From positions 1 to 64,000 of the forward strand of contig QPMI01000204.1 of the NCBI GenBank assembly GCA_004431415.1: a stretch of DNA of 64,000 nt. Direction: 5' to 3'. The position numbers and the translations under genes are program-made. Of this stretch, positions 18,120 through 53,411 are shown one piece after another. Source of the stretch: Cyanophora paradoxa CCMP329 (taxonomy: Eukaryota > Plantae > Glaucophyta). The notes under the pieces are model-generated. The model worked only from the letters and a program-made list of their open reading frames with translations, was not told where the DNA came from and did no database searches. Each line of letters opens with the position of its first letter. Position 1 is the first letter of the stretch.

Positions 18120-18174
18120 TCGCCCTTGAGCCTGGAGTGTGCTGCCGGGCAGAGAACGCTCAGCGGCTCGCCAG
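16995..18174. repeat. Left copy of a ~1.18 kb direct duplication flanking the LINE
   Basis: Matches 21340-22517 apart from homopolymer indels and a 7-nt insertion (cctggag, 18131-18137). Confidence 0.95.
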
Positions 18175-21339: not shown

Positions 21340-22517
21340 CGCGGGGCGGGATCCGACGGGGCGCAGGATCGCGTGCTGGCGCTGCTCCGCGACTTTGAAG
21401 GCGTGCCCCTCGACACCGACGCGGCCCGCCCCCGCCCCGCGCCCCGCTCCACCCCCCTTCGGGCCTGACGCCCGGCCCAGATCCTGATGGGCCTGGCGGG
21501 GCGCGGCGGGGCGCAGAAGAGCGCTGTGCGGCGCGCCCTGCAGCTGCTCGTCACCGAGGGCGTCGCCTGCACGCCGGTCGGCAAGTGCGGCGACCTCAAC
21601 ACGGTGCCCCGCCCCGCCCGCCGCCGCCGGCCCCGCTCACGCTGGTCCGCGCAGACGTACGAGGCACGCCCGGGGCGGAGCGGCCGCCCCTGGCCGCCCC
21701 GGAGGCCCCGCCCGCCCCGGCGGCGCACGTGCAGGTGCGGCCGCCGCCCCGCGCTTCTGACGGGCGAGCGGCCGATCCCGCGGGCGCCCTCTGCGCAGGC
21801 CAAGCGCGGCGGCGGCGGCGGGTCGCACGCCCGCCGGGGCAGCGCACCTCGCGGGAAGGCGGCTCGCGGGGCGAAAGGCAAGGGCGGGAGCCGGCGAGTC
21901 GGGGCCGCTGCGGTGTGCACCCGCGCGCCCTCTGCCGGCGGCGGCGGCGCCCGAGGGCGGGGCGCGGCAGGTCGGGCAGGTACAGGGGCCGCGGGGCGAC
22001 TTCATAGAGGAGGCGCAGGAGTGGGAGGAGCCGGAGGGCGCGCCGGCCTCCAACGAGCCCGAGGAGGTCGAGTCCATTCTGGACAGGTCCCGCCCCCCCG
22101 GCCCATGCCCCCGGCCGGCCCGCCCCCGTCAGCCCGACGCGCCCTCGCCGCGCCAGGGTCGTGAACCCCCAGACGGGGAAGCTCTTCTACAAGATCAAGT
22201 GGCTGAACTGCAACCACATCAGCTGGGAGCCGGAAGAAGTGAGCGACTGCCTGCCGGCGCCAGGCTGCTCGAGCTCGGCGGCTCGAGCCCCCGGTCGGGC
22301 CGGGCGCAGGCGGTTGCTGAGCTGTGGGGGCGCGCAGAACTGCGAGGGGTGCACGGAGCTCCTGGCGGAGTTCGAGGAGGGGTACCACGCCTGCGGCGGC
22401 AACCTCGGGCCCTCGCCGCCCCCGACCGCCCCCCTGCCTCGTGGCTTCCCCGCCGGCGTTACTGTGTGATCGCCCTTGAGTGTGCTGCCGGGCAGAGAAC
22501 GCTCAGCGGCTCGCCAG
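21340..22517 (+). pseudogene. Right duplicate: promoterless 3' fragment of the chromodomain gene
   Basis: Begins inside an intron; contains the chromodomain exons and stop (22469), followed by different downstream sequence. Confidence 0.85.
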
Positions 22518-30368: not shown

Positions 30369-33300
30369 ATGGAGGCCAGGTCGGGCCCTCGCAGCTGCGC
30401 TTAGCTTGGCGTACGCAGCTGACGCCTTGAGTTTCGCAGTGAGAGCCTCGCTGAGCGCGCCAGGCAGCGCATTTTGAAGAAGAAGAGAGGCGAGGAAAAG
30501 CGCGACTCGCCGTCAGACGAGGTCGAGGCAGTCCCATCTGCTTCCGGCGGGGACAGTCCGGTGGGATCTACTCCTGAACGCGCGCCGGAGGAGGAGCGGG
30601 ATGCGAGGAAGGAGCGCCCGCCGCCTATAGTATGAACTTTCAAATCTGTCACGGATCCGCGCAGCCTGACCAGCGTCCGCTGCGCCGCTGTCGCTGCAGG
30701 AGATCGAGACAGTGCCCGACAGGCCCATAGCTTCTGCATCTGAACCAGGAGCCTCTCGCTTCAGGGATCGGATACGGGTCAGTGTGCCACCAGCTCGAAC
30801 TAGCACATCCCGTGACGGCGGTGTTTTCTGGTTACTCAGGGCCGAAAGAACCCTGGAGATGCTGGAGCTGGTGTCGGACAGGTGCTCCCGTGCGAGCGCT
30901 CCGCGACATCCACGTGTTGGCTGAGGCGCATGCCGCAGGCTGAAGCGGGCCCTTCTTCGGCTGGAGGCGATTCGCCAGCGGTATGCGCGAGTATACATGA
31001 AGCGTTCCGCCTCAGCTTAGCGGGAGTGGCCCTCGCAGCAAGAGGACCCGGCAACTCCAGTGCAGCGCCGGATCGAGCGCCGTGTGCGCAGGAGTAGCCG
31101 GTTCGATCTTGTCCGAGGCTCCGGCGCATCAGAGGTGGACGAAAGCAGGGCATCCCGGCTCTCGGCCATAAAGGTTTGTACGCTGGCCGGTTATCTTCCT
31201 CGCCCGCTGATGCATTCGAGCACAGGAGAGCGCCCGACCCAGTGCTCGGGACGAGGGAGACAGGGCGAGCCGAGGGCAGGGCCCTGCTCCGGTGCCTGGT
31301 GCACCGGAATCTGCAGCGGTTCGTTGGCGACGATTGGCGAAGAAGGGATTTGACCGCTTGTTTGACTTTCAAGCAGGGTGTCGGTCTTGGAGAGCCCGAG
31401 ATTCCAGACACCGAGCAGGATACAGGAACCGCAAGCAAGGGCCCTGATGCTGCGGACGAAGAAGAATGCAAGGCTCTTGCTTCCTTTCCTTTTCTCTTTG
31501 TTTTCTGACTGCTGTGCGCCAGTCGTCGTGCCCGAAGATGAGTCGCTGGAGGCTATTCGCCGCGGGAAATGGCGATTTGCAGACCCCGAGAAACGTCTTG
31601 AGATCGTGCGCCCAGCGCCGCCGCCAACGAAGCCTCTTGTCAATGCCGCTGAGCAGGAAGCCAAGCACCTCTTCGAACTGCCAACGAGCTTCTTCTTTTT
31701 CGTGAGGGCACCTCCCAGCCGGCCAAGGGACGACGGCGGCGAAGAAGTGCGCCGCCTTCGCAGAAGGAAGGGACGCGGCTGCTCGGTCTGATTTTCCGCC
31801 AGGCGACCGCGTCTGGGGTTGTCCCCCGCATCGCCCGGGATGAGGGGCTGTACGTTGAGCGGAGGTGGTCGCTCTGCCCCCAACCCCTGCCGCCGGGCGC
31901 CTTCCTCTGATCGCGCGGGGGCCGTCAGCCCCTACCTCTCGGAGTCGAACCTGCGGCGCATCGAGTGGCGCTTCCTCCAGGAGGACCCCGAGTGCGCAGC
32001 GCCCCTCGGGGGCCCCGCGCGCCCCCCCGACGAAGCCTCCGCAGGCGGAGGCGGCTCTTCACAGCGCAGGGCGACGTTCTCGTCGGCGCGGACCCCGTGC
32101 TCCTCCGCAGGTGCCCCCGCCGTCCCTCGCGCCCCGCTCCTCCCGACGCCGCCCCCCGCAGCGGCCGCCCGAACCGCTGGTTCGACCCCTCCGCGCCCCA
32201 CTTGGAGCTTCTGTACGCTCGCCGCGTCTTCGCGCGGGTGCGCGGCTCTTGCGGGCGCCAGCGCGCGTGGCGGCTGAGGGCGGGGCAGGGCGTGCAGGCG
32301 GACCGGGAGAACAAGTTCGTGCTGGAGGTGGACGTGAACGCGGTGCAGTTCAGCGACCACCCACTCTGCATCAAGGAGGACATCCTCGCCGCCGAGCTCC
32401 ACGCCATGCACGCCTCCTTCAGGCCCGCCCCCGCCCCGCCAGCCCCGCCCCGGCCGCCGCCGAGCGGCTCGCAGGGCCCGGCAGCAGCTGAACATGGTGA
32501 CGTTCCTCACGAACAAGCTGGAGGCGCTCGAGGCGGAATGGCGGAAGCTGACGGGCGACCGCGTGGATACCGTCGAGCGCGAGAAGGAGGAGGGGGCCGG
32601 CAAGGAGCCGAGCCCCGCCACCGTCGAGCGCGACCGCCGCCTCGCGGTGCTCCGCCGCGAGATCCGCCAGACGCGCCAGCTGCGGGTGCGCCGCCCGGCT
32701 CCGGCCCCGCGTCGGGGCCCGACGGGGCGCCGCAGGACGACGAGGAGGAGCAGGAGCACGCCGTCGTCCGCAAGATGATCTCCACCTGGAACCGCATCAA
32801 GAAGCTCCGCCAGGTGCGCGGCCGGGCGGGGGCCGCCGCGCGAGGCCCGAGGCGAGGCGGGGCGGGGGCAGGACCAGGGCTTCACGTCGACGACGGCGAA
32901 GCTGACGGTGCGGCGGGTGGAGGCGGACGCGGAGGAGGACGAGGCGCGGCTGCGGCGCGACGTCGAGGACGAGGTCGCCCTCCTCGAGCAGGAGCACGAC
33001 GCCTCCTGCGCCGCCAAGGTGCCCCGCCCCCCGCCCCGCCCCCCGCCCCGCCCCCGGCCCCGCTCACGCCCCGCCAGGTGCGCGAGTACGAGGAGAACAT
33101 GCGCAAGTACGACGAGTACAGGCAATACCTGAAGGCCAAGGCGGAGCGCAAGCGGGCGAAGGAGGAGCGCGCCAAGGCCCGTGACGAGCTCGAGACGAAG
33201 CGGGCGGCGGCGGTGGCGGCGCGGGAGGCGCGGAGCCGGGAGCTCCTGGAGCGGGAGCGGAAGGAGGAGGAGGCGAAGAAGGAGCGGGGGGAGAAGAAGA

Positions 33301-36300
33301 AGCGGCGGGGCCTGAGCTCCGGGGGCGGGGAGCTGCGGGACGAGGCGCTGGAGGGGTCGGCGCGGGAGCTGGCGGACCTCGAGCCGACGAAGGAGGAGCT
33401 CGAGCTCGAGCAGGCCCTCCGCCAGCTCGAGGCGCCCCTCGCCCTCGCCCCCGTCAAGCGCCTCCCCAAGGCCCGCCCCGCCCCGCCCCGCCCCGCCCCG
33501 CCCCGCGGCGCGGTGCCTGAGGCGGGAGCAGGTGGAGAAGCCGGAGCCGCCGGTGTACGTGGCGTTCCACCGGAAGAAGGAGGCGAAGGCCATCCAGGAG
33601 CGCCTCGAGCGCACCCGCCGCCGCCCCGGCGAGGCCCTCCTCTTCCCCATCGTCGCCCGCTCCACCGTCCCCACCCCGGCCGCCGAGTGTCCCCCGGTAC
33701 GCACCCCCGGGCCCGTGCGCGCCGCTCCGCTGACGCCCGCCGGGGCAGGCGGAGCGGGCGCGGCGGGGCCGGATCCAGGCCTACAACGTCTACGCGCGCC
33801 TCCTACTCAACGGGCAGCCCGTCTCCCGCACGAAGGTGCGGCCCGGCTCTTTTCTCCCCGCGGGCGCCGCCGACGGGCCGGCAGCCGGTGGCGCTCGGCA
33901 CGGGCTTCACGGCGACCTTCGACGAGCGCTTCAGCATCCACACGGCTCGCTACCCCGACAGCATCGCCGTCCAGATCATGCGGGTGGTGCGCGGGGGCGG
34001 CGGGGGCGGCGGGGGCGGCGGGGGCGGGCGTGACGGGGCGGCAGCGGCCGGCGCTGGCGGACGAGGTGGTGGCGACGGTGTACGTGCCGGTGCCGGACCC
34101 CGACGCCTCGCCGAGCAAGCTCCTGGGCGAGGGCCTCCTCGCCGGCGGCCCCGGGCCCCGGCCCCTCCAGCTCCTCGAGTTCACGGGGGACGCCCCCGCC
34201 GCCCCCGCCGCCGGCCTCACGGACCTCGCCGCCGAGTCCCCCGCCGGCCGCTTCCCCGCCGGCGTCCTCTCCCTCCACGCCTCCTGGGCCCCGCCCGACG
34301 TCGAGGCCGGCGTCACCGCCCCCGAGCCGCCCCTCAAGTGCGCCCCCCCGCCCGGGGGTCGCTCGCCGGGCCCGGGCCTGACGGCGGGCAGGGCGGTGGA
34401 GAGCATGCTGCCGCTGCGGCGGTCGGTGCTGGGCGCGAGCGTCTCGTCGGTGCGGCTGCGGCTGGAGGAGCAGCTCGTCGGGCTCGACCCGAACGACCCC
34501 CGCAACGGGCCCCTCCTCGACGCCCTCCGCGCCGCCCGCCAGGACCCGCGCTCCGCCCACGCCTTCCGCCCCAACATCCACTCCCGCCAGCTCCTCCTCC
34601 ACGCCGTGCGCCCCCCCTTCGCCAGCCGCGCCGCGCCGCGCTGCGGCGGCGCCGACGGGGCGGCAGGAGGCGGAGGCTGCAGAGGGGAAGGAGGAGCAGA
34701 CGAGCGAGGGGACGCAGAGCTCGGCGCAGGCGGCGGCGCTGGCGCGGCGGCTGGAGGAGCGGCACAAGAAGGAGGAGGAGCGGCTGGCGGCGGCGGGCCT
34801 GGCGCGCCCCTCGGACTTCCTCCTCCAGATCCGCGCCAAGCAGCGGGCCCTCCTCTACGCCAAGGGCCGCCTCTCCGCCCGCCCCGCCCTCACCGACATC
34901 GTCAAGGAGGAGCCCCTGCCCCAGTTCAAGGTCCCGCCCCCGCCCCCGCCCCGCCGCCCCCGGCCGACCCCCGCGCAGTTCTCCATCCAGTTCATCCTGG
35001 AGCTCTTCGCTCCGCGGCGGAAGCTGCGGCCGGCGCGGAAGACGCCCAAGGCGGCGACGAGCCGCATGCCGGAGCGCTGCTCGCTCGTCGTGCAGGTCAT
35101 CCGCGCCTACAACCTCCCCGTCCGCTCCAACGCCGCCGAGGCCGCCGGCCCCACCTCCACCCGCATCGAGCGCTCCACCATCCGCCGCGGCGCCGTCAGG
35201 CGCGCCCCCCTCGGCCCTCCCCGCGCCCCGCTCCGCCTTACTCGCCGGCAGCATGCTCTCGGGGGTCTCAGTGGCCGGCGGGGAGGGCGCCGCGGCAGCG
35301 CCGCCGGAGCCCGAGGACCTCTCCGCCTCGTCCGGAGCCGAGGTGCGCCGTGCGCCGCGGGCCGCGGGGCGGGGGCCGACAGGGCGCGCAGCGGCTGCAG
35401 CCGTACGCGGAGGTGCGCTTCATGTCGCGATCGGGGCGGACGCGCTGCATGGAAGGCTCCAGCCCGCAGTGGAACGAGGCGCGCCGCCCGCCTGGCGCCC
35501 GGGGCGGGGCGGGGGCTGAGGCGGCGCGCAGGCGGTGACGATGCCGGTGGAGATCATCCAGGCGAAGGGCTTCTCCCCCGAGGAGGTCCGCGACGAGATC
35601 TCCATCAACTTCTTCGACGAGAGCGTCGCCGAGAAGCCCCGCGTGCGCCCCCCCGCCCCGCCCCGCCTCCCCGCGCCTGCGTGCCTGAGGCGGCGCAGGA
35701 CGACCGGCTGAAGAACACGGTCACGCACCACGTCGAGCGGCGCTGGCTCGGCTCCTTCTCCCTGCGTGCGCCCCGCCGGCCCCGCCCCGCCGCGCGCCCC
35801 GGCCCGACGCCGCGCAGCGTTCACGACGCTGTACGCGAACGAGCGAATCGAGGGGACGTTCGAGCTGGAGACGCCCATGGTGAACCTCGGCTACCGGCAC
35901 GAGGCCGGGGACACGCTCAAAGGAACCCTCTCCACCCTCGGCTCCCCCGCCCCCGAGGAGCGCCCCGAGGGGGAGGCCAAGGCGGAGGAGGCGGGGAAGA
36001 AGGGGGAGAAGGAGAAGGCGGCGCCCTCGATGGTCTCCCTCTTCTTCGCCCTCGACCCGCCCCTCTTCTCCCGCGAGCCCGTCGAGGACGAGGCGCGCCC
36101 CGCCCCCTCCCGCCCCCTCCCGCGTGGCGCTGAGGGCGGGGGCAGCTGGCGACGACGGAGGAGCGCTCGCTGATGCAGTACGGCGCCCAGTGGCTCCGCG
36201 AGATCCGCCGCCACAAGCACCTCCAGCGCCGCGACGCCAGGGCCCGCCCCGCCCCGCCCCGCCCCGCCATTCCCCGCCCCGGGCGCCGGCTGAGGCGGCG

Positions 36301-37630
36301 CCGGCAGTTCACGGTGGCGGACATCAACGGGTCGGCGGTCTTCGTGTGCCGCTACGTGCGGGCCGGGGGCATCGCGCCGCCCCCCGAGCTCTCGACGCCG
36401 GGCAAGGTCGCCCGCTTCGTCTCCCTCATCCCCTTCCTCGAGGACGCCGCCGCCTTCAAGGGCCGCACCGACGTCTGGGCCACCTGCGAGGCCCGCCCGC
36501 CCGCCCGCCCGCCCGCCCGCCGCCCCTCGCCGCGGGGTGCGACGCCGGCGCAGGAGTTCCTGGAGCTCTCGGCGGGGGACTACGAGGAGCACGCCGTCCT
36601 CCTCTGCAACCTCCTCAACAAGCTGCTCGCCCGCGACAACAAGGGCTCCGCCTTCGTCTGCGCCGGGCGGGGCATCCCCGAGGGCAAGACCTACTACGTC
36701 CTCGTCAAGGGCAAGGAGAGCGCCGCGCCGCAGGTGTGGAACGCGCACACGGGCCGCAGCTACAGCGTCAAGGACCCCTTCTGCCCCCTCCAGGAGATCC
36801 ACTATATCTTCGACCACTCCAACGTCCGCCCGCCGCCGGCCCCGGCCCCGCCGCCCCGCGTGACGCGCCGGCGCAGATCTGGGTGAACGTGCAGGCGACG
36901 GCGGTGCCGTCGCGGATGAGCTTCAGCCTCGGGGTGGAGTCGGCGTGGAAGCCGTTCTTCGGGGCGCGCGGCTTCAAGGCGCCGGTGATGGAGTCGATCC
37001 AGGGGGAGCGGGTGCGGTACCCCGTGGCGGGGACGAAGGAGGTCCGGGAGCTCGAGGCGCGCGTCGAGCAGTACCTCATCAAGCAGTTCGAGGGCTGGCG
37101 CCTCCGCATCGGCGTCACCCAGTGGAACCGGTCCGCCCCCCCCGCCCCGCCCCGCCCCGCCTCCTCCGCGCGCCGACGGGGCGGGGGCAGGGTGTGCGGG
37201 CGCATCCTGAAGACGCTGCTGCCGGGGCTGGAGCAGGCGCGGGGCGAGGGGAGGGACCTCGCCGGCGTCCGCGAGCTCGCCCGCGGCCACGCCGACGACC
37301 TCTCCCAGGCGCGCCCCGCCCCCCCGCGCCCCGCGCCCCGCCCCGGGCGAGCCCGGGCAGGTCCTCAAGACCTACTCCATCTTCGGCTTCCCCATCAACG
37401 TCTCCTACACGGACCTCGAGTCGGTGGGGCGCGCCGTCGAGAACACCCGCATCCACGACAGGTGCCCGCGGCGTCCAGCGCCGCCCCGCGCCGGGGGCCC
37501 CGCTGACGGGCGCGCGGGGCGCAGCGACGACCGCTCCCTCGAGTTCGCGCTCGCCGTGCACGTCCACCCCTACCCCTGCCGCGTCTTCTCCATCTGGATC
37601 TACCTCGCCTCCCTCCGGCCCCTCCACTAG
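30369..37630 (+). CDS. CC2D2A: Ciliary transition-zone protein CC2D2A/MKS6 (coiled coil, C2 domains, CEP76/DRC7-type transglutaminase-like domain), more than 25 introns
   Basis: VQFSDHPLCIKED; QGFTST; VQVIRAYNLPVR; PYAEVRF..EGSSPQWNE; ERRWLGSFSL|PFTTLY..IEGTF; VARFVSLIPF; AGDYEEHAVLLCN; FALAVHVHPYP..SIWIYLASL*. Confidence 0.93.
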
Positions 37631-38260
37631 CGGCCTCCGAGCCCTCTGCGCCACCTCCGCCTCCTCCCGCCCTTCACTTCCTCGCCCTGAAGCGACCCCT
37701 CCCTGCAGCTGCCCGCCCCCGCTTTAACGGGGGGCGCGCCACCCCTATCGCTATCGCAATCGTCGCTGTGAAGGCTCCGCAGGCAGCGACCGTTCATAGT
37801 GCTAGTTTTCAATTGTCGTCGTGCGTATACATTCTTGATCACAGAAAAAGCAAAACTGCTGCCTTACTGAGGAAAAATTGCGCGGGTCAGATATTACTAT
37901 GATATCAAGAAAGGCTCAGAACTAGCTATAGCTGCACAGTGCGAGCCTCGAATGGGTTCAATTTGGATTACAGGCTACGTCGTAAACTACTGCATATGCG
38001 AAGTATACGTACGAATACGGAAGGTGATTATCGGAAGAATTTGAAATGCGTGGAAAAACGCAGTTTGAAGAGAGATCCTTGAAAGAACTCTGGATGCATA
38101 TGTACATGCAAAAAGTTGCACGAGCACACAGAAAAGCCCCGCGCGGGAAAATCCACAAGGGACAAAAAGCACGGCGGTTACGACGGAGGGCGTGCGGGCC
38201 GAAGGGCGCGCCGGACGGGCCGACCGGCAGCGAACGGGCGGGGAAGAGCTGCGCTCAGGG

Positions 38261-40702
38261 TCAGCCGAGCGGAGAAGGGACGAGGGGGGTGCCACGCACA
38301 GTCGAGCTCCGCGCCGAACGTCGGCGAGACGGGGCTCGGGGCGGACTGCGCCAATACGGCGTCAGGCGGGGCGCGAGGGTCGCGCGGAGCGGCAGGCGGC
38401 AGACCCGCGTGCGGGGCGGCGGGAACGAGGGGTCGAAAGACGGCTTGGGGGACTGCGGGGCGGGCCGTCAGAGGGGGCGGGGCGGGGCGAGGGGGGGCGG
38501 GGGCACCTGGAGGGAGAGGGTGCGCTCGAGGTCGGAGCCGAGCGGGGTGAGGCAGCGGAGGCCGAGGGCCCTAATCCCGCCCCCGCCGGCCCCGTCGTCC
38601 CGTCGAAGAGCGGCACCGGCGTCGCCGCGGCGCGGGCCGAGCCGGCGATCGCGCGCAGGGCGGGGGACGGGCACGGGGAGGCGGCCGGGGAGGCCGGCGG
38701 GGGCGAGGCGCGCTCGAGGAGGCCGAGCCGGCCGGAGCGGAGCGGGCGAGGGGCGCGCAGGAGACGGGGCCACGCGGGGCGCGGGGAGGGCGGAGGTGGC
38801 GGAGCGGGTGCGGCCCATCAGTGCGGCCTCGACGTCGGGGCTCGCCCCGCGCGGGCTTTGCATCCCCGCCCGCCCCGCCACCGGCGACGGGCACGGCGAG
38901 CTCCCCAGCGAGCCGGCCGGCAGGCTCACCCGCACCACCCGCGAGCGCGGCGCCTCGTCCACCGCCGACACTGCAGCGCGCCGGCGTCAGACGTCGACGC
39001 AGGGCGGGGGACGGCGGGCCGGGGCGGACCGGCGCTCGGAGAGGGCGAGCGGCCGCGGGCGGCCGCATCCTTGGCGGCAGCCGGCGAGGGCGGGATCCTG
39101 CGGCGGCCGATCAGAGCGCGGGGCGGCGGGGCGGCGGGGGCGGCGCACTTCTCCTCGGGGATGGGGGGGATCCGGGCGGCGGGGGCCGAGGCGAGGCGGA
39201 CGAGGGGCTCGCCGGTGAGCGGGTCCTGCGTCACCGTCACCATCCGGATGTTCCCGCTCGACTTCCTCCGCCCCAGCACCGGCGACGCCGCCGGCGCCGG
39301 CGACGCTGCCCCGGCGTGTAAGCGGCGGCGCGGCGTGCGGCGGCGCCGGCCGGCACCTGTGGCGGATCGCGGGTCGCGCTTCACGTATTGCCCGATGGCC
39401 GCGGTGAGAATCGCGTCCACTGCCGCCGACGGGTCCGGCCCGCTCGCCCCGCTGCGCGCCCTCGTCGGCGAGGGCGACGGGCGGGGCCGGGCTGGCAAGG
39501 CGCCGGGGCCGCACGTGACCCTGGGGCTCATTCTCGCGCTCTCGGACATGCAGCCGACGGAGGCGGAGCGCCGGTGAGCGGCGGAGGCGGTCGGAGAGCC
39601 GACGGACATCGACAACGGGGAGCACTTGCCCGACGCCGGCGTCCGCGCCCGCTTCGCCGGCGACGGCGCCGATTGGCCGCAATCCTCCGAGAACAGAGAT
39701 CGCTTTGGGCTGAAGATGGTGAGGTCCGAAGCCGACGCGGGCCCTGGAAACGAGCGGTGAGACCCGGAAGGAACCAAGACAGGAAGAAGCGTACTTCGGG
39801 AGGCGCAGCTGATCGGTTTCGATGATGCAAAAGAAGCGGACGTTACGTGACTGAAGATTGAAGTGATGGGCGCAGCGGGCAAGCCTGCGGCGTGAAAGGG
39901 TACGAAAGTGAGATGATGAGGCACTGCGAAGCAGAAAGAAGACATGTAAAGGACGTCTGCACCGCTGTTGACTGACACAGCGCGCTTGAGAGGCTTCGAT
40001 TCCTCGGCGGGACCCCCTGAGCGGCAAGAGCGCCTCAAAACCTCTGGCAGGCTGGCGCACGCGACTCGGCGAGACCGCGACACGCACACTGAGTAACATC
40101 GACGTGCAGCTCTTCAACAACGGGGCCCGTCGCAGCAATCGCGGCGGGCCACTTGTCTGTGGTGCAGGGGGCAATCAGCTGGCGTGCGTTCGTCACAGAA
40201 AACGGCGGAGCGGCGCAGACCTTCCAAAGAGGGACACTCGAGTGAGCTTTCGTTGCCCAGTAGATCTTCGAGTTCGGGGTCCTGATCACGCATTTCGGCG
40301 TCCGCGACGCCAGCATCGGCTGCGCGACGCGCGGGGGGGGGGGCGTTCAGCGATGGTGTTGCGCTCAGAGCAGCATATAGATGATAAGGAATGATCGCTA
40401 GACGGCAGACGCCGCGTCGAACGCCGGCAGCGGCGCGTTGGAGAACGTGAAACTTCGGCCGTTTATCGAGCCGTCCCGGATCACGCGGCGACGAATGACG
40501 CACGAAGCAAGTCATTGCTGAACAATAGCGCTTCCGCCAGTTCGCCGTCGAGAGAGAGCGTCGCGTTGAGGAGGTTCAAGGTGGCGTTGTGCTGGGCCTG
40601 GCCGGCGGGCGCGACCGATGAAGACAACGCTGGATGATCGATGTACAGGTCGTCGTCCAGCGCCGCTCCGCCGAGGAACTCATCGATCCCCAGGCCTGCC
40701 AT
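38261..40702 (-). CDS. Hypothetical Ser/Pro-rich multi-exon protein, copy 1
   Basis: ATG 40702 MAGLGIDEFLGG...; long low-complexity exons with GT/GC-AG introns; no recognisable domain; exon structure uncertain. Confidence 0.5.
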
Positions 40703-41296
40703 CGTACGATTTCCCTGCGTCGCTCGCAGACGGTGCTGGCCGCTGCTGGCGAGCGTGAACTTCACAGCGTGGAACAGGCGTCGACGTCGCTCGCGAAGCC
40801 AACGTTCACAAGGTGACTCCTCTAGCCGCTGCAGTCGATGCGGATCCGGCCGAGTTAGTCCAAGCCAGCGGTACCCCCCTGGAGGCTTGCAAAAATCGAA
40901 GCGTCGCGCGACTAATCTATGTCAATATTGCCCTGCATATGCATGCGCAAGCAAATAAGCGCTAGCCTAGTAGCGCCGGCGCCGGCCCCCGCCGCCGACG
41001 CGGCGTTTCATTTACGCTTATTATACGTATACGTATACTGCAGCAGTGTTAGCGCTAGCGCAAGCTGTACTCCGGTCGACCGGGCCGTCGACGTCTCATA
41101 TTGATCATGAATTTGAATAACTTGTACGCTGCTAGCAGCGTACGTACCGAGTACGGAATCCTACTAGGCTACGGATCTAGAGCTAGACCGTCGGACTCCG
41201 GATCGTCTCAGATTCGTCTGCCGCATGCGCAGTGGCGTGGGCCGTCGTGCCGCGCGTACGGTGCACGTGGCCATGGACCCCGCCCGGGGCCTGGGT

Positions 41297-41624
41297 TCAC
41301 TTCTTGAACCACTTGGGCTTCTTGGGCGCGTCGCCCTGCCCGCCGGCCGCGCCGCCTTCCCGCTCGTAGTCGCGGCGCGGGGGCGCGGGGCCCGGCGCCG
41401 CCTCCGCGGGGCCGGCCTGCGACTCTGCGGCGACGGCCTGCGGGGCGGGGCGTGAGGGGGGCGGGGGAGGGGGCGGGGCGGGGCGCGCCCGCGGGATCTC
41501 CTCGACGGTGAGGTCCTCGGCGGTCGCGAGCAGGGCCTCCCGCAGGAAAAGGCCCCCCGTCTGGCCGTCAGCGCCGCGTCGGGCGGGGCGGAGCGGGGCG
41601 GGGCGGGGTGACGCGGGGCGGGGC
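41297..41624 (-). pseudogene. Orphan copy of the last two TUG exons
   Basis: GGLFLREALLATAEDLTVEEIP..KKPKWFKK*. Homology to 45791-46100 ends at the stop codon, and the upstream acceptor is mutated (cag to ctg). Confidence 0.8.
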
Positions 41625-41899
41625 CCGTCTGCCCGGGAGAGGCCCGTTCGCAAAGCAGCCGCGGAGGAGAACGCGGGCCTGCTGGCGCCAGCGCCGGCAG
41701 AGCTCGAGGGGGGGATTGAGCGCGAGGTCGACTTCCACGTCGGGCCGGCGGTCGCCCGACACGTCACGGCGTTGAGAAGCTCGGCAAACGGAGTCCACTG
41801 ACGTCGATGCCCGACGGACCGGCGACGGTCGCGTCTAGCGTGATGACGAATACGTACACGCACGTGCATGCACGCCGGAGAGCTCCGGGGCTCCGGGGC

Positions 41900-43499
41900 T
41901 CAGGGGCCGAGCAGCTCGACGCGGGAGCTCGGCAGGAGCCGACGAAGCGAGCCGAGGGTCCTGCCCTGCTCGACATGCTCCGCCGTCTCTCGGAGGCTGA
42001 CCTTCTCCCTCAGGAGGCGAACCTGAGGGGGGTAAGATTGGGAGGGGGTACGTGTGCAGGGGGTGCGGCGTGGACCTCGAGGCGGGCGCCCAACGGTGCG
42101 AGGGCCGCGAGGACCTCGTCCCCTGGGGGCAGGTCCCCTTGGTAGCAGGAGAAGGGGAGCGAGAGGAGGACCGACTCGAGCGGGGGCCCGCGGGCGGCGA
42201 GGGCTGCGAGATCGCCCGCGGCCGGCGGCTCCTTCACGGTCAGGGCCAGGGAGCGCAGGACCGCCCCGGCGCCCTCCAGTAGCGGGGGCAGGAAGCCCCC
42301 AGGGGGCGCGGTCACGTCTGCGCGAGAGGTACGATTACAGCTCGTCTGCGAACGATAATGGGGCACGCACCGGATTCAAACTCGAGGTGGAGGGTGGCGA
42401 GAGACGATCGGCGGACGGCCTCTCCTAGGCGTGACAAGTAGCTCCCCCAGGTTGTGTGATCTAAAATTAGCCGGGCCTCCCTTAGGGGCCCTTGCTGCTC
42501 CAGGCCACTCCACAGCTTCGGTGCCTCTTCAAGCCTGCGGGCCCGGGAGGAGAGGGGGGGGGGGTTAGCAAGGGGTAGGGGTCGAACCGGGGTACACGCA
42601 CGAGACGAAGAGCTTGGAAGCGACGCGCTCGAGACGGGGGAAGGAGAAGAGGGCTGCGGTCCCTTCGGGGTTGTACCGGTCCAGCCGAATCTTTTCCCTG
42701 CGGGGAGAGCGTCAGTTGGTGGATGGGTACAGATATCAGGGAGAGCGGAAGGGGGTGCGGCGAACCCGAGCTCGAGGGAGCGGAGGGAGGTGCCGGCGGG
42801 CGTTCCGACGAGGGATTTGAGATAGCTGCCTTTGGTGGAGCTGCCGGGGCAGCGGATGGCGAGGTCCTCCAGCGGGAGGGCCGAGAGCTGCCGCAGGACG
42901 AGGTCGGCGTTACGCTTGCCCCATTGACCGACGAGGTCGACGCCGAAGCTGAGCCGCCGGAGCCGCGGGCAGCGCGCCGCGATCTCCCGCGCTGCGTCGT
43001 CGCGGGTGTGCAGCTCCGGCGGGAGGTGCAGGCCGGTGAGGCGGTGGAGCCCCGGCGGCGCTCCGCCCAGCGCCTCACGGAGCGTGTCGACTGTCAGGAG
43101 ATTATCATCGACCGTCAGCGCCGCTTCGAAGCTCTCCGCGCCGCCCGCCGCCGGCGCCGCGGCCGCCGCGCAGGCCTCGACAACGCCCGCCGCTGCTCCG
43201 AACAGCTGCAGCACTTCGTCTCGCATCGCCTGGCGCCGTGCCCGCTTCAACGTGATGCTCACAGCGTCCGACCGCACTCGCCCGTCCCGCACCAGCGCCG
43301 CCAGCCGCTCAAGCGCGGCCGGGTCGTCGGCGGTGCCGACACTCCGGAGCTCGCCACGCCACGCCACGCCGCCCTCGACGGCATCTCGAAGGCGGCGGCA
43401 CGTACGCCGCGCGGTCCACGCGCCCGTGAGGCCAACGAGCTGCAGGATCTTCTCTAAGATGCCCTCGGGAAGGTCCAGCAACCAGCTTGAGTGCTGCAT
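41900..43499 (-). CDS. F-box/LRR-like protein A, copy 1
   Basis: LLDLPEGILEKILQLV..ARRTCRRLRDAV (F-box); CPRLRRLSF, LEDLAI, LRSLEL (LRR-like); spliced end RVELLGP*. Confidence 0.78.
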
Positions 43500-43748
43500 A
43501 TCGCGCGCCGTGGCAGCGTGTCATCAAGGACGATGAAGGAGAGCGAGCCAACGCTAGCTGCGGTTAATACCGTTGGCTCGCAGCTGCAGAGGACTCTGCC
43601 CTCTGAGACAGCTTAGAGTCGGGAGCCGGAGGACTCCGGGAGGACCCGGCCGCGGAGGACTCCGGGAGGTCCGGGGAGGAGGCTGGGGGGTACGTCAACG
43701 CGTGGGGACGTACGCAGTGCCAGCAGCACGGGCTCCATTGCTTGGGGC

Positions 43749-45344
43749 ATGGAGCAGTCGCGCATTTCGCTGCTGGACCTGCCCGACGATCTTCTTGTGA
43801 GCGTTCTGCAGTTTGTGGGCCTCGCGAAATCGTGGACCACGCGGAGTACGTGCCGCCGCATCCGCGACGCTGTCGAGCGCTGCACGTGGGGGGGCGAGCT
43901 CCGGGCGGCCGGCGCCGCGGACGACCCGGCCGCGCTGGAGCGGTTGGCGGCGCTGGTGCGGGACGGGCGAGTGCGGGCGCGGGCGGACGCTGTGAGCATC
44001 ACGTTGAAGCCGGGACTTCGGCGGCGCGAGACGAAGGAAGTCGCGGTGCTGCGGCTGTTCGTAGCGGCGGCGGCCGTGGTTGAGGCCTGCGCGGCAGCCG
44101 CGGCGCCCGCGGCGGGCGGCGCGGCAAGCTTCGAAGCGTCGCTGGCGGTCGAGGAAAAGTTTTTCCCAGCCAGCACGCTTCACGAAGCGCTGAGCGGAGC
44201 GCCGCCGGGGCTCGATCGCCTCACCGGCCTACACCTCCCGCCGGATCCGAAGCTGTACATAAGCGAGAATATGGCGCAGCTGATAGCCGCGAAGTGTCCG
44301 CGGCTCCGAAGCCTCAGGATTGCCGTCCAGGGTCGCTGGGGTCAGCTGCATCAGAACATGGACCGCTTTTTGGGCCATCTCTCGGCCCTCTCGCTGGAGC
44401 ACCTCCTCGTTCGGTGCCCCGCTCGCATCCAAGGCAGCCATCTCGAGGTCCTCGTCGGCACGCCCGCCGGCCGCTGCCTCCGCTCCCTCGAGCTCGGGTG
44501 GGACATACCCATCCCCGCGCACTCCTGTACCCCCTTATGCGCTTCTGGGAAAAGGGATAGGGTCCGGCTGCACAGCGACGGGATTCGAGCCCTGTTCTCC
44601 CTCCCTCGCCTCGAGCGCATCGCTTCGAAGCTCTTAGTCTCGTGCGTGTACCCCCCCGCCCGCCCGGTGCACCCCGTACCCCTTGCTCATCTCCCCGGTC
44701 CCGCAGGCCGGAGGCGGCAGCGGCGCTGTGGAGGGGTCTGGAGCGGCAAAAAGCCCTGAGAGCCGCCCAGCTAATTTTAGATCACACAACCTGGGGGAGC
44801 TACTTGTCGCGCCTAGGAGAGGCCGTCCGCCGATCGTCTCTCGCCACCCTCCACCTCGAGTTCGAATCCGGTGCGTGCCCCATTACCGTTCGCAGACGAG
44901 CTGTAATCGTACCGCCCGTGCAGACGTGACCGCGCCCCCTGGGGGCTTCCTGCCCCCGCTACTGGAGGGCGCCGGGGCGGTCCTGCGCTCCCTGGCCCTG
45001 ACCGTGAAGGAGCCGCCGGCCGCGGGCGATCTCGCAGCCCTCGCCGCCCGCGGGCCCCCGCTCGAGTCGGTCCTCCTCTCGCTCCCCTTCTCCTGCTACC
45101 AAGGGGACCTGCCCCCAGGGTACGAGGTCCTCGCGACCCTCGCACCGTTGGGCGCCCGCCTCGAGGTCCGCGCCGCACCCCCTGCACACGTACCCCCTCC
45201 CAATCTTACCCCCCTCAGGTTCGCCTCCTGAGGGAGACGGTCAGCCTCCGAGAGACGACGGAGCATCTCGGGACCCTGGAGGCGTTCCGGCAGCTGCTCC
45301 CAGACGCCCGCGTCGAGCTGCTCAAGGCCCCTAGCTATATATAG
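43749..45344 (+). CDS. F-box/LRR-like protein B, copy 1 (inverted paralog of A)
   Basis: LLDLPDDLLVSVLQFV..RSTCRRIRDAV; CPRLRSLRI; spliced end RVELLKAPSYI*. Confidence 0.78.
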
Positions 45345-45790
45345 ATAACAACAAGAGGTTAATTGCCGCTGTGCAGCTGCCTGTTCAACTGCTGTTTAAA
45401 ACAATAACAAGATCTGTACATGTACATTCATGATTGTGTTCCATTGCAAATTGCGCTGCGTTATCAGTTATCAATATGCATCGCCCGGTCACTTGGCGGC
45501 CAGGCCTGTCGCCGAGTCGATCGCGACGTCACTGAGTCAGTGCATGCAGTGCGCGTGCGCGTGCCCCTGCCTAAAGCGTGCTAGCCCGCCGGCGCCGTGA
45601 CGTTCAACGGTTCTTTCATGATGTGCCACAGCCGTTGAGATGCAGCGTGCTCGATATCGATATCAATTTCGACTGCGCATGCGCATACACGCACAGCCGC
45701 TGAGCACCAGTTGCAGCCGCGTCGGTCTGGTCGACGCCCTATGTTGCATAAATGATCGCTGCTGTGTTCTTCGTGCATCCGGCCCCAGGC

Positions 45791-47398
45791 TCACTTCTTG
45801 AACCACTTGGGCTTCTTGGGCGCGTCGCCCTGCCCGCCGGCCGCGCCGCCTTCCCGCTCGTAGTCGCGGCGCGGGGGCGCGGGGCCCGGCGCCGCCTCCG
45901 CGGGCCGGCCTGCGACTCTGCGGCGACGGCCTGCGGGCGGGGGCGTGAGGGGGCGGGGAGGGGCGGGGGCGGGGCGCGCCCGCGGGATCTCCTCGACGGT
46001 GAGGTCCTCGGCGGTCGCGAGCAGGGCCTCCCGCAGAAAAAGGCCCCCGTCTGGCCGTCTGCGCCGCGTCGGGCGGGGCGGGGCGACGCGGGGCGGGGCG
46101 GGCGCGCCTTCGAAGGCGAAGTTGAGGAGGGTGGCGGCTGCGTGCGCTCGCGGGTTACGCGTGGCGGGGTGGCGCGAGGAGGGCCCCTCACGCGTGAGGC
46201 CCGCCGCGTGCACGCTCGTCCCCGACTCCGCCACGCGCTGCACCGGGGGCGCCACGTCTGCGAGCTGTGAGGGCCGGCGGGGCGGGGCGGGGCGGGGCGG
46301 GGCGGGCACAGAGGTAGAAGGGGCGCGGGGCGGCGAGGCGCTGGCGGACGAAGTCGTAGACGTCCGCGACGCGCTCCCGCGCCGCGAAGGTCCCCTGCAG
46401 CACGAACCGGTCCGGGAAGCGCACGCGGATCAGGCACTGCGCGCCCCGCCCGCCGGTCAGGGCGCGGGGCGGCGGGGGGCGGCGGGGCGGGCGGGCCTTG
46501 GCGTAGCGGCGGCGGCGGCGGGCCTCCATCTCCTCCCGCAGCTTGCGCGTGAGCAGGAGGTCGCCGTCGCTGCGCGGGCCTCGCGCGGGGCGCGGGGCGC
46601 GGGGGCGGCGCGTGGCGCGGGGCGGGCCTGGCGTGGGCGGCGCGCTGGACGATGGCGAGGTCCTCGACGGTGAACTCGAAGAAGTCGTCGGGGACCTCGA
46701 AGCGCCCCGGGTCGGGGCCCCCCGCCGCCGGCCGCAGCACCCGCGCCTCCCGCTCGCACGTCGCCGGGCCCACCGGCCCCTCGTCCCCCCGGCCCCCCGG
46801 CCCCGCCGCCCCCGCGCCACTGGCTGGGGCGCCGGCTGGGCGGAGGGGCCGGGGCGCGGGGCCGGTGCGGGGGCCGGGGCGGGTGCGGGTGCCGGGGCGG
46901 GGGCGGCCGGCTGGGCGGGCTTCGGGGGCATCTTGAACTGGGCGAAGTCGGGGTTGATGCGCACGTCGCGGCTGGGCTCCCCCGGCGGGGCGCGGGCGCC
47001 GAGGGCCGGCCGAGGGCCCGGGGCGGCCTCGGGGAACTTGAAGTTGGCGAACTCGGGGTTGCGCGCCGGGGCGTGCACGAGGACGGCGTTGTCCGCCCCG
47101 CCCGCTGCTCCCCCGCCGCCGGGAACTTGAAGTGCGCGAACTCCGCCGCCACGCCCCGCGGCGCGTCCGACCGCGCCACGTCCTCCCCCGCCGCCTCCGC
47201 CGCCCGCCCCGCCGGGCCGGGCCGGGGCCGGGGCGGGGCGGGGCGGGCGGGGCGGGGCGCGGGGGCCGGAGGGATTCGGCGGTGGCGATCTCGAGGCGGG
47301 CGTCCTCGAGGGAGAGGCCCGAGGGGGCGAAGGCGACGCGATCTCGAGGCGGGCGTCCTCGAGGGAGAGGCCCGAGGGGGCGAAGGCGACGCGGAAGA
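45791..47398 (-). pseudogene. 5'-truncated TUG copy (UBX half only) created by the tandem duplication
   Basis: Lacks the UBL exons present at 57030-57817 and carries a 53-bp frameshifting duplication at 47285-47390. Confidence 0.8.
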
Positions 47399-47928
47399 GG
47401 GGCGCGCCACCCCTATCGCTATCGCAATCGTCGCTGTGAAGGCTCCGCAGGCAGCGACCGTTCATAGTGCTAGTTTTCAATTGTCGTCGTGCGTATACAT
47501 TCTTGATCACAGAAAAAGCAAAACTGCTGCCTTACTGAGGAAAAATTGCGCGGGTCAGATATTACTATGATATCAAGAAAGGCTCAGAACTAGCTATAGC
47601 TGCACAGTGCGAGCCTCGAATGGGTTCAATTTGGATTACAGGCTACGTCGTAAACTACTGCATATGCGAAGTATACGTACGAATACGGAAGGTGATTATC
47701 GGAAGAATTTGAAATGCGTGGAAAAACGCAGTTTGAAGAGAGATCCTTGAAAGAACTCTGGATGCATATGTACATGCAAAAAGTTGCACGAGCACACAGA
47801 AAAGCCCCGCGCGGGAAAATCCACAAGGGACAAAAAGCACGGCGGTTACGACGGAGGGCGTGCGGGCCGAAGGGCGCGCCGGACGGGCCGACCGGCAGCG
47901 AACGGGCGGGGAAGAGCTGCGCTCAGGG

Positions 47929-48137
47929 TCAGCCGAGCGGAGAAGGGACGAGGGGGGTGCCACGCACAGTCGAGCTCCGCGCCGAACGTCGGCGAGACGG
48001 GGCTCGGGGCGGACTGCGCCAATACGGCGTCAGGCGGGGCGCGAGGGTCGCGCGGAGCGGCAGGCGGCAGACCCGCGTGCGGGCGGCGGGAACGAGGGGT
48101 CGAAAGACGGCTTGGGGGACTGCGGGGCGGGCCGTCA

Positions 48138-48171
<34 letters not shown>

Positions 48172-50365
48172 CTGGAGGGAGAGGGTGCGCTCGAGGTCGG
48201 AGCCGAGCGGGGTGAGGCAGCGGAGGCCGAGGGCCCTAATCCCGCCCCCCGCCGGCCCCGTCGTCCCGTCGAAGAGCGGCACCGGCGTCGCCGCGGCGCG
48301 GGCCGAGCCGGCGATCGCGCGCAGGGCGGGGGACGGGCACGGGGAGGCGGCCGGGGAGGCCGGCGGGGGCGAGGCGCGCTCGAGGAGGGCCGAGCCGGCC
48401 GGAGCGGAGCGGGCGAGGGGCGCGCAGGAGACGGGGGCCACGCGGGGCGCGGGGAGGGCGGAGGTGGCGGAGCGGGTGCGGCCCATCAGTGCGGCCTCGA
48501 CGTCGGGGCTCGCCCCGCGCGGGCTTTGCATCCCCGCCCGCCCCGCCACCGGCGACGGGCACGGCGAGCTCCCCAGCGAGCCGGCCGGCAGGCTCACCCG
48601 CACCACCCGCGAGCGCGGCGCCTCGTCCACCGCCGACACTGCAGCGCGCCGGCGTCAGACGTCGACGCAGGGCGGGGGACGGCGGGCCGGGGCGGACCGG
48701 CGCTCGGAGAGGGCGAGCGGCCGCGGGCGGCCGCATCCTTGGCGGCAGCCGGCGAGGGCGGGATCCTGCGGCGGCCGATCAGAGCGCGGGGCGGCGGGGC
48801 GGCGGGGCGGCGCACTTCTCCTCGGGATGGGGGGATCCGGGCGGCGGGGGCCGAGGCGAGGCGGACGAGGGGCTCGCCGGTGAGCGGGTCCTGCGTCACC
48901 GTCACCATCCGGATGTTCCCGCTCGACTTCCTCCGCCCCAGCACCGGCGACGCCGCCGGCGCCGGCGACGCTGCCCCGGCGTGTAAGCGGCGGCGCGGCG
49001 TGCGGCGGCGCCGGCCGGCACCTGTGGCGGATCGCGGGTCGCGCTTCACGTATTGCCCGATGGCCGCGGTGAGAATCGCGTCCACTGCCGCCGACGGGTC
49101 CGGCCCGCTCGCCCCGCTGCGCGCCCTCGTCGGCGAGGGCGACGGGCGGGGCCGGGCTGGCAAGGCGCCGGGGCCGCACGTGACCCTGGGGCTCATTCTC
49201 GCGCTCTCGGACATGCAGCCGACGGAGGCGGAGCGCCGGTGAGCGGCGGAGGCGGTCGGAGAGCCGACGGACATCGACAACGGGGAGCACTTGCCCGACG
49301 CCGGCGTCCGCGCCCGCTTCGCCGGCGACGGCGCCGATTGGCCGCAATCCTCCGAGAACAGAGATCGCTTTGGGCTGAAGATGGTGAGGTCCGAAGCCGA
49401 CGCGGGCCCTGGAAACGAGCGGTGAGACCCGGAAGGAACCAAGACAGGAAGAAGCGTACTTCGGGAGGCGCAGCTGATCGGTTTCGATGATGCAAAAGAA
49501 GCGGACGTTACGTGACTGAAGATTGAAGTGATGGGCGCAGCGGGCAAGCCTGCGGCGTGAAAGGGTACGAAAGTGAGATGATGAGGCACTGCGAAGCAGA
49601 AAGAAGACATGTAAAGGACGTCTGCACCGCTGTTGACTGACACAGCGCGCTTGAGAGGCTTCGATTCCTCGGCGGGACCCCTGAGCGGCAAGAGCGCCTC
49701 AAAACCTCTGGCAGGCTGGCGCACGCGACTCGGCGAGACCGCGACACGCACACTGAGTAACATCGACGTGCAGCTCTTCAACAACGGGGCCCGTCGCAGC
49801 AATCGCGGCGGGCCACTTGTCTGTGGTGCAGGGGGCAATCAGCTGGCGTGCGTTCGTCACAGAAAACGGCGGAGCGGCGCAGACCTTCCAAAGAGGGACA
49901 CTCGAGTGAGCTTTCGTTGCCCAGTAGATCTTCGAGTTCGGGGTCCTGATCACGCATTTCGGCGTCCGCGACGCCAGCATCGGCTGCGCGACGCGCGGGG
50001 GGGGGGCGTTCAGCGATGGTGTTGCGCTCAGAGCAGCATATAGATGATAAGGAATGATCGCTAGACGGCAGACGCCGCGTCGAACGCCGGCAGCGGCGCG
50101 TTGGAGAACGTGAAACTTCGGCCGTTTATCGAGCCGTCCCGGATCACGCGGCGACGAATGACGCACGAAGCAAGTCATTGCTGAACAATAGCGCTTCCGC
50201 CAGTTCGCCGTCGAGAGAGAGCGTCGCGTTGAGGAGGTTCAAGGTGGCGTTGTGCTGGGCCTGGCCGGCGGGCGCGACCGATGAAGACAACGCTGGATGA
50301 TCGATGTACAGGTCGTCGTCCAGCGCCGCTCCGCCGAGGAACTCATCGATCCCCAGGCCTGCCAT
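47929..50365 (-). CDS. Hypothetical Ser/Pro-rich protein, copy 2
   Basis: Duplicate of 38261-40702. Confidence 0.5.
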
Positions 50366-50958
50366 CGTACGATTTCCCTGCGTCGCTCGCAGACGGTGCT
50401 GGCCGCTGCTGGCGAGCGTGAACTTCACAGCGTGGAACAGGCGTCGACGTCGCTCGCGAAGCCAACGTTCACAAGGTGACTCCTCTAGCCGCTGCAGTCG
50501 ATGCGGATCCGGCCGAGTTAGTCCAAGCCAGCGGTACCCCCCTGGAGGCTTGCAAAAATCGAAGCGTCGCGCGACTAATCTATGTCAATATTGCCCTGCA
50601 TATGCATGCGCAAGCAAATAAGCGCTAGCCTAGTAGCGCCGGCGCCGGCCCCCGCCGCCGACGCGGCGTTTCATTTACGCTTATTATACGTATACGTATA
50701 CTGCAGCAGTGTTAGCGCTAGCGCAAGCTGTACTCCGGTCGACCGGGCCGTCGACGTCTCATATTGATCATGAATTTGAATAACTTGTACGCTGCTAGCA
50801 GCGTACGTACCGAGTACGGAATCCTACTAGGCTACGGATCTAGAGCTAGACCGTCGGACTCCGGATCGTCTCAGATTCGTCTGCCGCATGCGCAGTGGCG
50901 TGGGCCGTCGTGCCGCGCGTACGGTGCACGTGGCCATGGACCCCGCCCGGGCCTGGGT

Positions 50959-51287
50959 TCACTTCTTGAACCACTTGGGCTTCTTGGGCGCGTCGCCCTG
51001 CCGCCGGCCGCGCCGCCTTCCCGCTCGTAGTCGCGGCGCGGGGGCGCGGGGCCCGGCGCCGCCTCCGCGGGGCCGGCCTGCGACTCTGCGGCGACGGCCT
51101 GCGGGGCGGGGGCGTGAGGGGGGCGGGGGAGGGGGCGGGGGCGGGGCGCGCCCGCGGGATCTCCTCGACGGTGAGGTCCTCGGCGGTCGCGAGCAGGGCC
51201 TCCCGCAGGAAAAGGCCCCCCGTCTGGCCGTCAGCGCCGCGTCGGGCGGGGCGGAGCGGGGCGGGGCGGGGTGACGCGGGGCGGGGC
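50959..51287 (-). pseudogene. Orphan TUG 3' exons, copy 2
   Basis: Duplicate of 41297-41624. Confidence 0.8.
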
Positions 51288-51562
51288 CCGTCTGCCCGGG
51301 AGAGGCCCGTTCGCAAAGCAGCCGCGGAGGAGAACGCGGGCCTGCTGGCGCCAGCGCCGGCAGAGCTCGAGGGGGGGATTGAGCGCGAGGTCGACTTCCA
51401 CGTCGGGCCGGCGGTCGCCCGACACGTCACGGCGTTGAGAAGCTCGGCAAACGGAGTCCACTGACGTCGATGCCCGACGGACCGGCGACGGTCGCGTCTA
51501 GCGTGATGACGAATACGTACACGCACGTGCATGCACGCCGGAGAGCTCCGGGGCTCCGGGGC

Positions 51563-53161: not shown

Positions 53162-53411
53162 ATCGCGCGCCGTGGCAGCGTGTCATCAAGGACGATGAAG
53201 GAGAGCGAGCCAACGCTAGCTGCGGTTAATACCGTTGGCTCGCAGCTGCAGAGGACTCTGCCCTCTGAGACAGCTTAGAGTCGGGAGCCGGAGGACTCCG
53301 GGAGGACCCGGCCGCGGAGGACTCCGGGAGGTCCGGGGAGGAGGCTGGGGGGGTACGTCAACGCGTGGGGACGTACGCAGTGCCAGCAGCACGGGCTCCA
53401 TTGCTTGGGGC

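Follow-up and report, generated by a model that had tools for sequence, protein, structure and literature searches.

Lone adenines as likely branch points in GC-rich introns lacking a pyrimidine tract in a CC2D2A-like gene of Cyanophora paradoxa

In yeast and fungal introns the 3' end is read from the branch site and the first AG at a suitable distance beyond it, and a U tract is dispensable. Human branch sites mapped by lariat data carry, two bases before the branch adenine, U in 74.6%, C in 16.0%, A in 6.6% and G in 2.8% of cases (PMC2367711, Table 4). Human introns with weak tracts are rescued by C-rich and G-rich intronic enhancers (PMC2481429), and in intron-poor species with a strict branch word the branch-to-AG distance has been described as constrained (Irimia and Roy 2008, PMC2483917). 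Our literature search found no paper on branch sites, GC donors or pyrimidine tracts in Cyanophora. Here we describe the introns of a CC2D2A-like ciliary gene in a stretch of 64,000 nucleotides (nt) of Cyanophora paradoxa CCMP329 (contig QPMI01000204.1, positions 1 to 64,000; hereafter the window, about 71% G+C). The assembly of this alga has 67.6% GC, short introns and 9.2 introns per gene (PMC6704402). In our view these are probably ordinary GT/GC-AG introns of the major spliceosome, whose signals GC pressure has squeezed to a working minimum and which are read by a tolerant standard spliceosome. Positions within the branch word are counted below from the branch adenine, and distances such as -12 from the 3' end of the intron.

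The CC2D2A-like gene lies at 30438-37630 on the + strand and consists of 37 coding exons and 36 introns, with a TAG stop codon at 37628-37630; the part covered by a preliminary description of this DNA is its 3' portion. The 26 introns from 31992 onwards, with 82-100% GC, are referred to as the GC-rich introns. In 16 of these 26 the body contains just one adenine, that of the terminal AG not counted, and it lies 11-16 nt before the 3' end. Every intron retains one or more adenines 11-19 nt from its 3' end, most often at -12; among the 26 the adenine frequency peaks at -12/-11 (65% of introns), and none is found at -10 to -6. The lone adenine is likely the branch point. The same arrangement was seen in a pooled set of 87 introns, made up of the 36 introns supported by the gene model and 51 predicted by our own gene finder, which are reported separately. 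Although A makes up only about 3% of the intron bodies, it was present between -30 and -6 in 87 of 87 introns, and in 34 it was the sole A.

The preliminary description had pointed to a word of the form [CG][TC]GA[CG] or CTCAC about 8-20 nt before each AG. Its examples are all in place: CCGAC at 33870, 34652, 35376 and 37173, GCGAC at 36539, GCGAG at 37347, and an acceptor preceded by G runs at 59831-59860. With the adenine at -20 to -8, the word was found in 25 of the 26 GC-rich introns, compared with 4.6 +/- 2.0 in 1000 dinucleotide shuffles. CCGAC alone, whose lack of enrichment had been named as an outcome that would speak against the proposal, was found in this zone in 9 of 26 introns (shuffles 1.5 +/- 1.1, maximum 6), and the form with U in 11 of 26 (shuffles 0.4). 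The word was also present at 85% of real acceptors as against 30% of GC-matched decoy GCAG sites. This difference was carried very unequally by its two forms: the C form, found at 42% of real acceptors and 24% of decoys, was only about 2-fold enriched, whereas the U form, at 38% and 1.6%, was enriched more than 20-fold. The word is degenerate, with 19 different 5-mers among the branch words.

These results depend on the introns being real, which they are as far as the sequence can show. An unspliced open reading frame with the region as query was used in a large protein search, and the exons were searched one by one. The sole database protein that matched, P0001 (eukprot tig00000852_g5023.t1, 1729 amino acids), has C2, CC2D2A-N-C2 and CEP76-peptidase-like domains and matches exactly onto window positions 30438-37627; its contig and gene naming follows the style of the 2019 C. 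paradoxa assembly paper (PMC6704402). Intron ends were checked against this protein by means of ten-codon joins around each junction. P0001 fixes 36 introns, and for each gap one unique G[TC]..AG solution reproduces the protein (36/36); the 18 introns drawn by hand between 33697 and 37524 are all among those that it implies. That these stretches are not introns at all, or that their ends have been misplaced by an artefact of gene modelling, seems highly improbable. Such an artefact could be suspected given that the public gene model, tig00000852_g5023.t1, is an uncurated, transcript-guided Augustus prediction (PMC6704402), so that confirmation at the RNA level is indirect. The hand-drawn exons stay in frame throughout, down to the TAG at 37628, but this is weak evidence alone, since stop codons are rare and open frames cheap in DNA of 75% GC. 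Against an artefact stand the 36 unique solutions and the intron lengths (48-70 nt), as 26 of the 36 introns are not multiples of three and would shift the frame if retained. Domain continuity across junctions in two genes, this one and a COP1-like gene, points the same way: in the Pfam family PF24656 the exon at 36554-36823 corresponds to profile positions 8-94 and the exon at 36877-37128 continues at 95-121, so that the profile runs gap-free across the intron 36824-36876. Finally, the positional A signal was not used to call the introns. With G[TC] at the 5' end, AG at the 3' end and the frame restored on removal, all 36 belong to the U2-type. Their donors, either G[TC][GC]CGC or AT-richer GT forms, do not resemble the [AG]TATCCTT of U12-type introns, and no TCCTTAAC-like U12 branch word, expected 10-15 nt before the 3' end, was found in the introns examined.

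To count bases around the branch, the 52 introns of the pooled set with exactly one A in the zone were taken. At position -2 there were 32 U, 20 C and neither G nor A, that is, 62% U and 38% C, while intron bodies as a whole contain 52% C, 38% G, 6.5% T and 3% A. The near-invariant U of the yUnAy consensus had been reported as lacking from many of these words, and this is borne out by the 20 introns of 52 with C; a pyrimidine was nevertheless present in 52 of 52. Relative to composition, -2 shows an about 10-fold excess of U (p 4e-25) and an exclusion of G (p 2e-11), and C matches its background share or falls slightly short of it (p 0.05); the ratio of U to C comes to 12.9 times the one expected from composition. 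Position -2 thus calls for a pyrimidine, preferably U, and C is not as good as U. C at -2 was also found in 14 of the 34 introns with a single adenine in all, and if the nucleophile is an A, the C-form sites in these introns must be the ones used. The flanking positions (n=52) were G in 60% at -4, C in 75% at -3, G in 83% at -1, C in 63% or G in 35% at +1, and G in 69% at +2. Compensation of C at -2 by stronger neighbouring bases was looked for and not seen.

One explanation for C at -2 would be a change in the U2 small nuclear RNA (snRNA) itself, such that it pairs with C. We regard this as very improbable. All that speaks for it is how frequent C is at -2 (38-41%), and the counts just given run against it: U is about 10-fold enriched and C is not, but a G opposite -2 would pair with C and U alike. 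A U2 changed to pair C would wobble with U, leaving no reason for a 10-fold excess of U. In addition, the flanks fit the canonical box, and the part of U2 that contacts the branch is reported to be strictly conserved among eukaryotes (PMC4315302). A changed U2, as put forward in the preliminary description, was thus not borne out, U being strongly favoured, purines never occurring at -2 and the neighbouring bases fitting the unchanged box. An Rfam scan of the whole window gave no match to an snRNA, U2 included, or to any other family.

The bases observed, G, C, Y, G, C and G, are instead the G/C choices for pairing or wobbling with residues of the canonical U2 box, and the favoured account of squeezed signals read by a standard spliceosome may be put as follows. 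The lone A would act as the nucleophile in branching and bulge out of a helix formed with an unaltered GUAGUA box of U2. The sequence G C Y G A C G would then be the all-G/C solution for pairing with U37, G36, A35 and U34, and with G33 and U32, by G.U wobbles and C-G pairs. Only A35 would be left without a G or C partner, making -2 the sole place where GC pressure and pairing conflict; it may accordingly be held in a mutation-selection balance in which U is favoured and a C.A mismatch tolerated. This would be why U persists at -2 in introns otherwise containing 2-4% T, as A35 is not satisfied by G or C. With the branch at a minimal distance from the 3' end there would be neither room nor need for a U tract of the U2AF65 type. 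Very short introns might be recognised as a unit, with the 3' site being the first (G)CAG at a suitable distance beyond the branch. Within the gene, U and C at -2 stand at 9:1 in the first ten introns and at 13:13 in the remaining 26; since U-type words predominate in the AT-richer first ten (U at -2 in 9 of 10) and the rest are GC-rich, one machinery serves both kinds.

Several points weigh against this account. The register of the helix, in which intron positions -4, -3, -2, -1, +1 and +2 presumably face U37, G36, A35, U34, G33 and U32, is given in human/yeast U2 numbering, and the U2 of the alga may differ. The branch nucleotide was inferred from sequence, not from lariats. C at -2 shows only a trend with intron GC (r 0.19, p 0.09, 87 introns), owing to the small number of AT-richer introns in the window. 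The 51 predicted introns are less certain, with only one junction confirmed by homology. Lastly, GC pressure alone does not explain why the introns, as described below, turn from C-rich to G-rich at the branch word.

GC donors were found in 34 of the 87 introns, or about 39%, compared with about 1% in human. The preliminary description held that the same U-to-C relaxation appears at both sites paired with snRNAs, the donor and the branch. As a genome-wide tendency this stands, but the two are not linked within introns: having a GC donor was unrelated to having C at -2 (Fisher p 0.39 and 0.27). A coupled change at donor and branch within one intron was rejected on this test (Fisher p 0.27-0.39). 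The parallel is best read as one compositional pressure on two sites facing snRNA adenines. C-to-U editing of the pre-mRNA, restoring U at donor +2 and branch -2 before splicing, was also considered. Both variable sites are indeed U/C sites opposite snRNA adenines, but no evidence supporting editing was found, and a large fraction of all introns would each need site-specific editing. Other eukaryotes, moreover, splice GC-AG introns and C at -2 without editing, and the two C variants are unlinked within introns. Of all explanations for the C variants editing appears the most far-fetched to us. The algal donors resemble GC-AG introns described elsewhere (PMC3167603; PMC7072748) in the U-to-C change opposite an snRNA adenine at +2 and in a stronger exon-side AG: the exon ended in AG at 16 of 34 GC donors and at 13 of 53 GT donors (p 0.04), the usual compensation for a GC donor. 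A further feature of the donors in the GC-rich introns is the consensus G[TC][GC]CGC (for example at 33987, 35479 and 36491), with C at +4 in about 88% and at +6 in about 85%, and with G at +5. At +4 and +6 a G is hardly ever found; this preference exceeds composition and mismatches the usual GURAGU complement of U1.

In the GC-rich introns the tail, taken from branch +2 to -4 of the intron end, consists of 61% G, 35% C and 2% T, and the head before the branch word of 58% C and 36% G. The pyrimidine fraction falls from 0.61 upstream to 0.40 in the tail (Wilcoxon p 1e-11). Tails without any T were found in 59 of the 87 introns and a run of at least three G in 44 of 87. The absence of a polypyrimidine tract, claimed beforehand, was therefore confirmed, the tail having 2% T and fewer pyrimidines than the sequence upstream, with no tract of the metazoan or plant type between branch and AG. 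The G runs reported before acceptors were likewise found, both in the 61% G of the tails with the 44 runs and in the example at 59831-59860. The acceptor is GCAG in 25 of 26 GC-rich and 43 of 51 predicted introns. A G at -4 of the acceptor that strong is unusual for U2-type introns; the acceptor matrix of our gene finder did not use this position. When the branch adenine is at -12, only 6-8 bases lie between the stretch paired with U2 and the GCAG, and six to eight bases seem little room for a tract of the U2AF65 type. In the introns 35343-35391 and 33471-33531, AGs within a few bases of the branch are skipped, in keeping with a 3' site chosen by its distance from the branch. Judged by the composition of these tails, 3'-end recognition here, unlike that of animals and plants, clearly cannot rely on a U tract.

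The tails bear on the possibility that the proteins rather than U2 have been re-tuned. The KH-QUA2 pocket of SF1/BBP would then take any pyrimidine at -2, while U2AF65, or a replacement binding G runs or C runs, would need no U tract, with the C-rich head and G-rich tail as its binding sites. The complete lack of a U tract and the 61% G of the tail fit this proposal, as do the G at -4 in 25/26 and 43/51 acceptors, the 2.4-fold share of C at -2 compared with human, and the sharpness of the switch from C-rich head to G-rich tail at the branch word, which suggests function. However, changed proteins are not required, because human and yeast already splice C at -2 and introns without a tract, and U-type words prevail in the AT-richer introns of this gene. 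We consider re-tuned proteins with an unchanged U2 unlikely on balance, though worth keeping in view. The broader statement that C. paradoxa reads its intron 3' ends without a U-tract reader, from a lone A, a G-rich tail and GCAG by means of an altered U2AF/SF1 or a factor for G or C runs, is put forward equally tentatively. The re-tuned spliceosome offered in the preliminary description as the cause of these features is thus only partly supported: the relaxations are real and the U-tract step is clearly not in use.

The complementary composition of head and tail could also imply recognition by structure, with the C-rich head pairing with the G-rich tail and presenting the branch word in a hairpin loop. 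In predicted folds about half of the tail bases were paired between head and tail, and the branch A was unpaired with a probability of 0.86. Shuffles preserving only composition, however, gave the same values for the unpaired A (0.86) and nearly the same head-tail pairing (0.52 in the introns, 0.50 in the shuffles), and the fold energies were no lower than for the shuffled sequences (mean z +0.2). Almost no U is available for pairing with the branch A, which is why it is unpaired. Display of the branch word in a hairpin was rejected, since the folds are no more stable and the A no more unpaired than in the controls, and structure-based recognition is accordingly given little credence.

Set beside the human yUnAy and GC-context 'B-box' families (Gao 2008, PMC2367711; Mercer 2015, PMC4315302), the algal sites share a presumably bulged A and a pyrimidine at -2, where U is favoured but C allowed. 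They also share CUGAC as a top word, a probable wobble pairing of the flanks to the G/U-rich box of U2, and C-richer signals in GC-rich introns. They differ in having C at -2 in 38% instead of 16% and a purine in 0% instead of 9%, in a distance from branch to 3' end of 11-19 nt instead of 21-34 nt, and in lacking downstream the pyrimidine stretch that human sites have at +4 to +24. The algal pattern at -2 is a quantitative shift of a known tolerance. For the layout of head and tail, the closest tested analogue appears to be the class of short GC-rich human introns with weak pyrimidine tracts (Murray 2008, PMC2481429), which likewise have no usable U tract and carry C-rich and G-rich runs. In human, however, such introns are a minority with the motifs upstream of a weak tract, whereas in the alga the layout is standard, C-rich before the branch and G-rich after it; the function of the runs was tested in human, and the algal ones are known from sequence alone. 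With yeast and fungal introns the alga shares a tight distance between branch and 3' end and a 3' site readable as the next usable AG after the branch. It does not fall into the class of Irimia and Roy, defined by a strict word, a fixed distance and few introns: the distance is tight, but the branch word is degenerate, and the gene contains 36 introns, in an alga with about nine per gene (PMC6704402).

The individual introns of the gene, all on the + strand, are given here in order. The first ten (30630-31928) lie in DNA of 46-83% GC; their donors are mostly GT followed by A or T and their branch words mostly of the U form (CTGAC, GTGAC, CTGAG, CTGAT, TTGAC). The gene thus spans a compositional break near 31.9 kb, with introns 1-10 at 46-83% GC and the next 26 at 82-100% GC. 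Several of the first ten contain T-rich stretches, and signal composition tracks local GC within one transcript. The next eight, GC-rich introns (31992-33531) carry CCGAC three times, CCGAG and CTGAG twice each, and CTCAC. The intron 33697-33748 has a GT donor and CTGAC with the A at 33733 (-16). It is followed by four with GT donors: 33836-33884 (CCGAC, A at 33873, -12, the only A in the body), 33987-34044, which is G-rich throughout (GTGAC, only A at 34033, -12), 34338-34391 (CTGAC, only A at 34381, -11) and 34606-34666 (CCGAC, A at 34655, -12). A GT donor is also found in 34931-34978, with CCGAC and its only A at 34967 (-12), and a GC donor in 35200-35251, where the word is CTTAC and the only A is at 35240 (-12). 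In 35343-35391 (GT donor, CCGAC, A at 35379, -13) a second A is present at -11. The intron 35479-35531 has a GC donor, CTGAG and its only A at 35519 (-13); the following two have GT donors, 35643-35698 with CTGAG and 35766-35817 with CCGAC, their only A being at 35688 (-11) and 35807 (-11), respectively. Three GC donors in succession belong to 36093-36145 (CTGAG, only A at 36133, -13), 36242-36307 (CTGAG, A at 36293, -15) and 36491-36553 (GCGAC, only A at 36542, -12). The intron 36824-36876, across whose junction the Pfam domain is continuous, has a GT donor and GTGAC with its only A at 36863 (-14), and 37131-37190 a GT donor and CCGAC with its only A at 37176 (-15). The last two are 37309-37360, with a GC donor, GCGAG and its only A at 37350 (-11), and 37462-37524, with a GT donor, CTGAC and the A at 37506 (-19).

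The gene finder used for the wider set scored codon log-odds, a donor matrix (-3 to +6), an acceptor matrix (-3 to +1), a length prior and intron content. The content term disregards the last 30 nt, and the positional A signal was unused in calling any intron. Only genes scoring at least 80 and introns with a CAG acceptor and a length of 40-120 nt were kept, and copies from a tandem duplication were removed. The program exactly recovered 16 of the 18 known introns and misplaced the acceptor of 2 of 18. Wrong calls among the 51 predicted introns would dilute the signal, not create it. The predicted intron confirmed by homology is 60022-60085, whose flanking exons align to COP1 residues 26-78 and 80-167, contiguous save for a split codon. 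It is the next intron but one after 59781-59860 (+ strand) in the same COP1-like gene, a predicted intron with a GTGAC word, four G runs and CAG. The four runs in its tail, of four or five G each, are enough for an RNA G-quadruplex; most other tails have one or two runs.

The window contains further features. The COP1-like gene, encoding a WD40 E3 ligase, lies at 58783-61398 (+), and its exons align contiguously to COP1 structures. A large gene at 6833-12946 on the opposite strand (-) has predicted exons resembling, by eye only, a sensor histidine kinase that also has a receiver domain. About 9.6 kb are duplicated in direct tandem orientation (37731-47340 and 47399-57014, 99.55% identity); the duplication contains two gene copies each, including a UBX-domain-like gene, and is either a very recent duplication or an assembly artefact. 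Inside each copy is an inverted pair of 1.5 kb with about 82% identity (41971-43480 and 43771-45270). A direct repeat of 1.18 kb with 98.7% identity was found at 16995-18174 and 21340-22517.

Branch points are the least well mapped of the splicing signals owing to the degeneracy of their word, and introns with a single adenine let the branch be read off the DNA. The alga is in this respect a clean natural test of how much of yUnAy is required, and of how a 3' site can be located when no U tract is present; here a pyrimidine at -2 seems to be obligatory, with U only preferred. There are consequences for gene prediction in this reference glaucophyte, whose models are known to need curation, as predictors trained on U-rich signals will miss GC donors and acceptors without a tract. 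If the splicing factors have changed, they would show the specificity of SF1 and U2AF evolving with genome composition, and if no U-tract reader is in fact used, this intron-rich alga would be a natural example of tract-independent, C-tolerant selection of the branch site.

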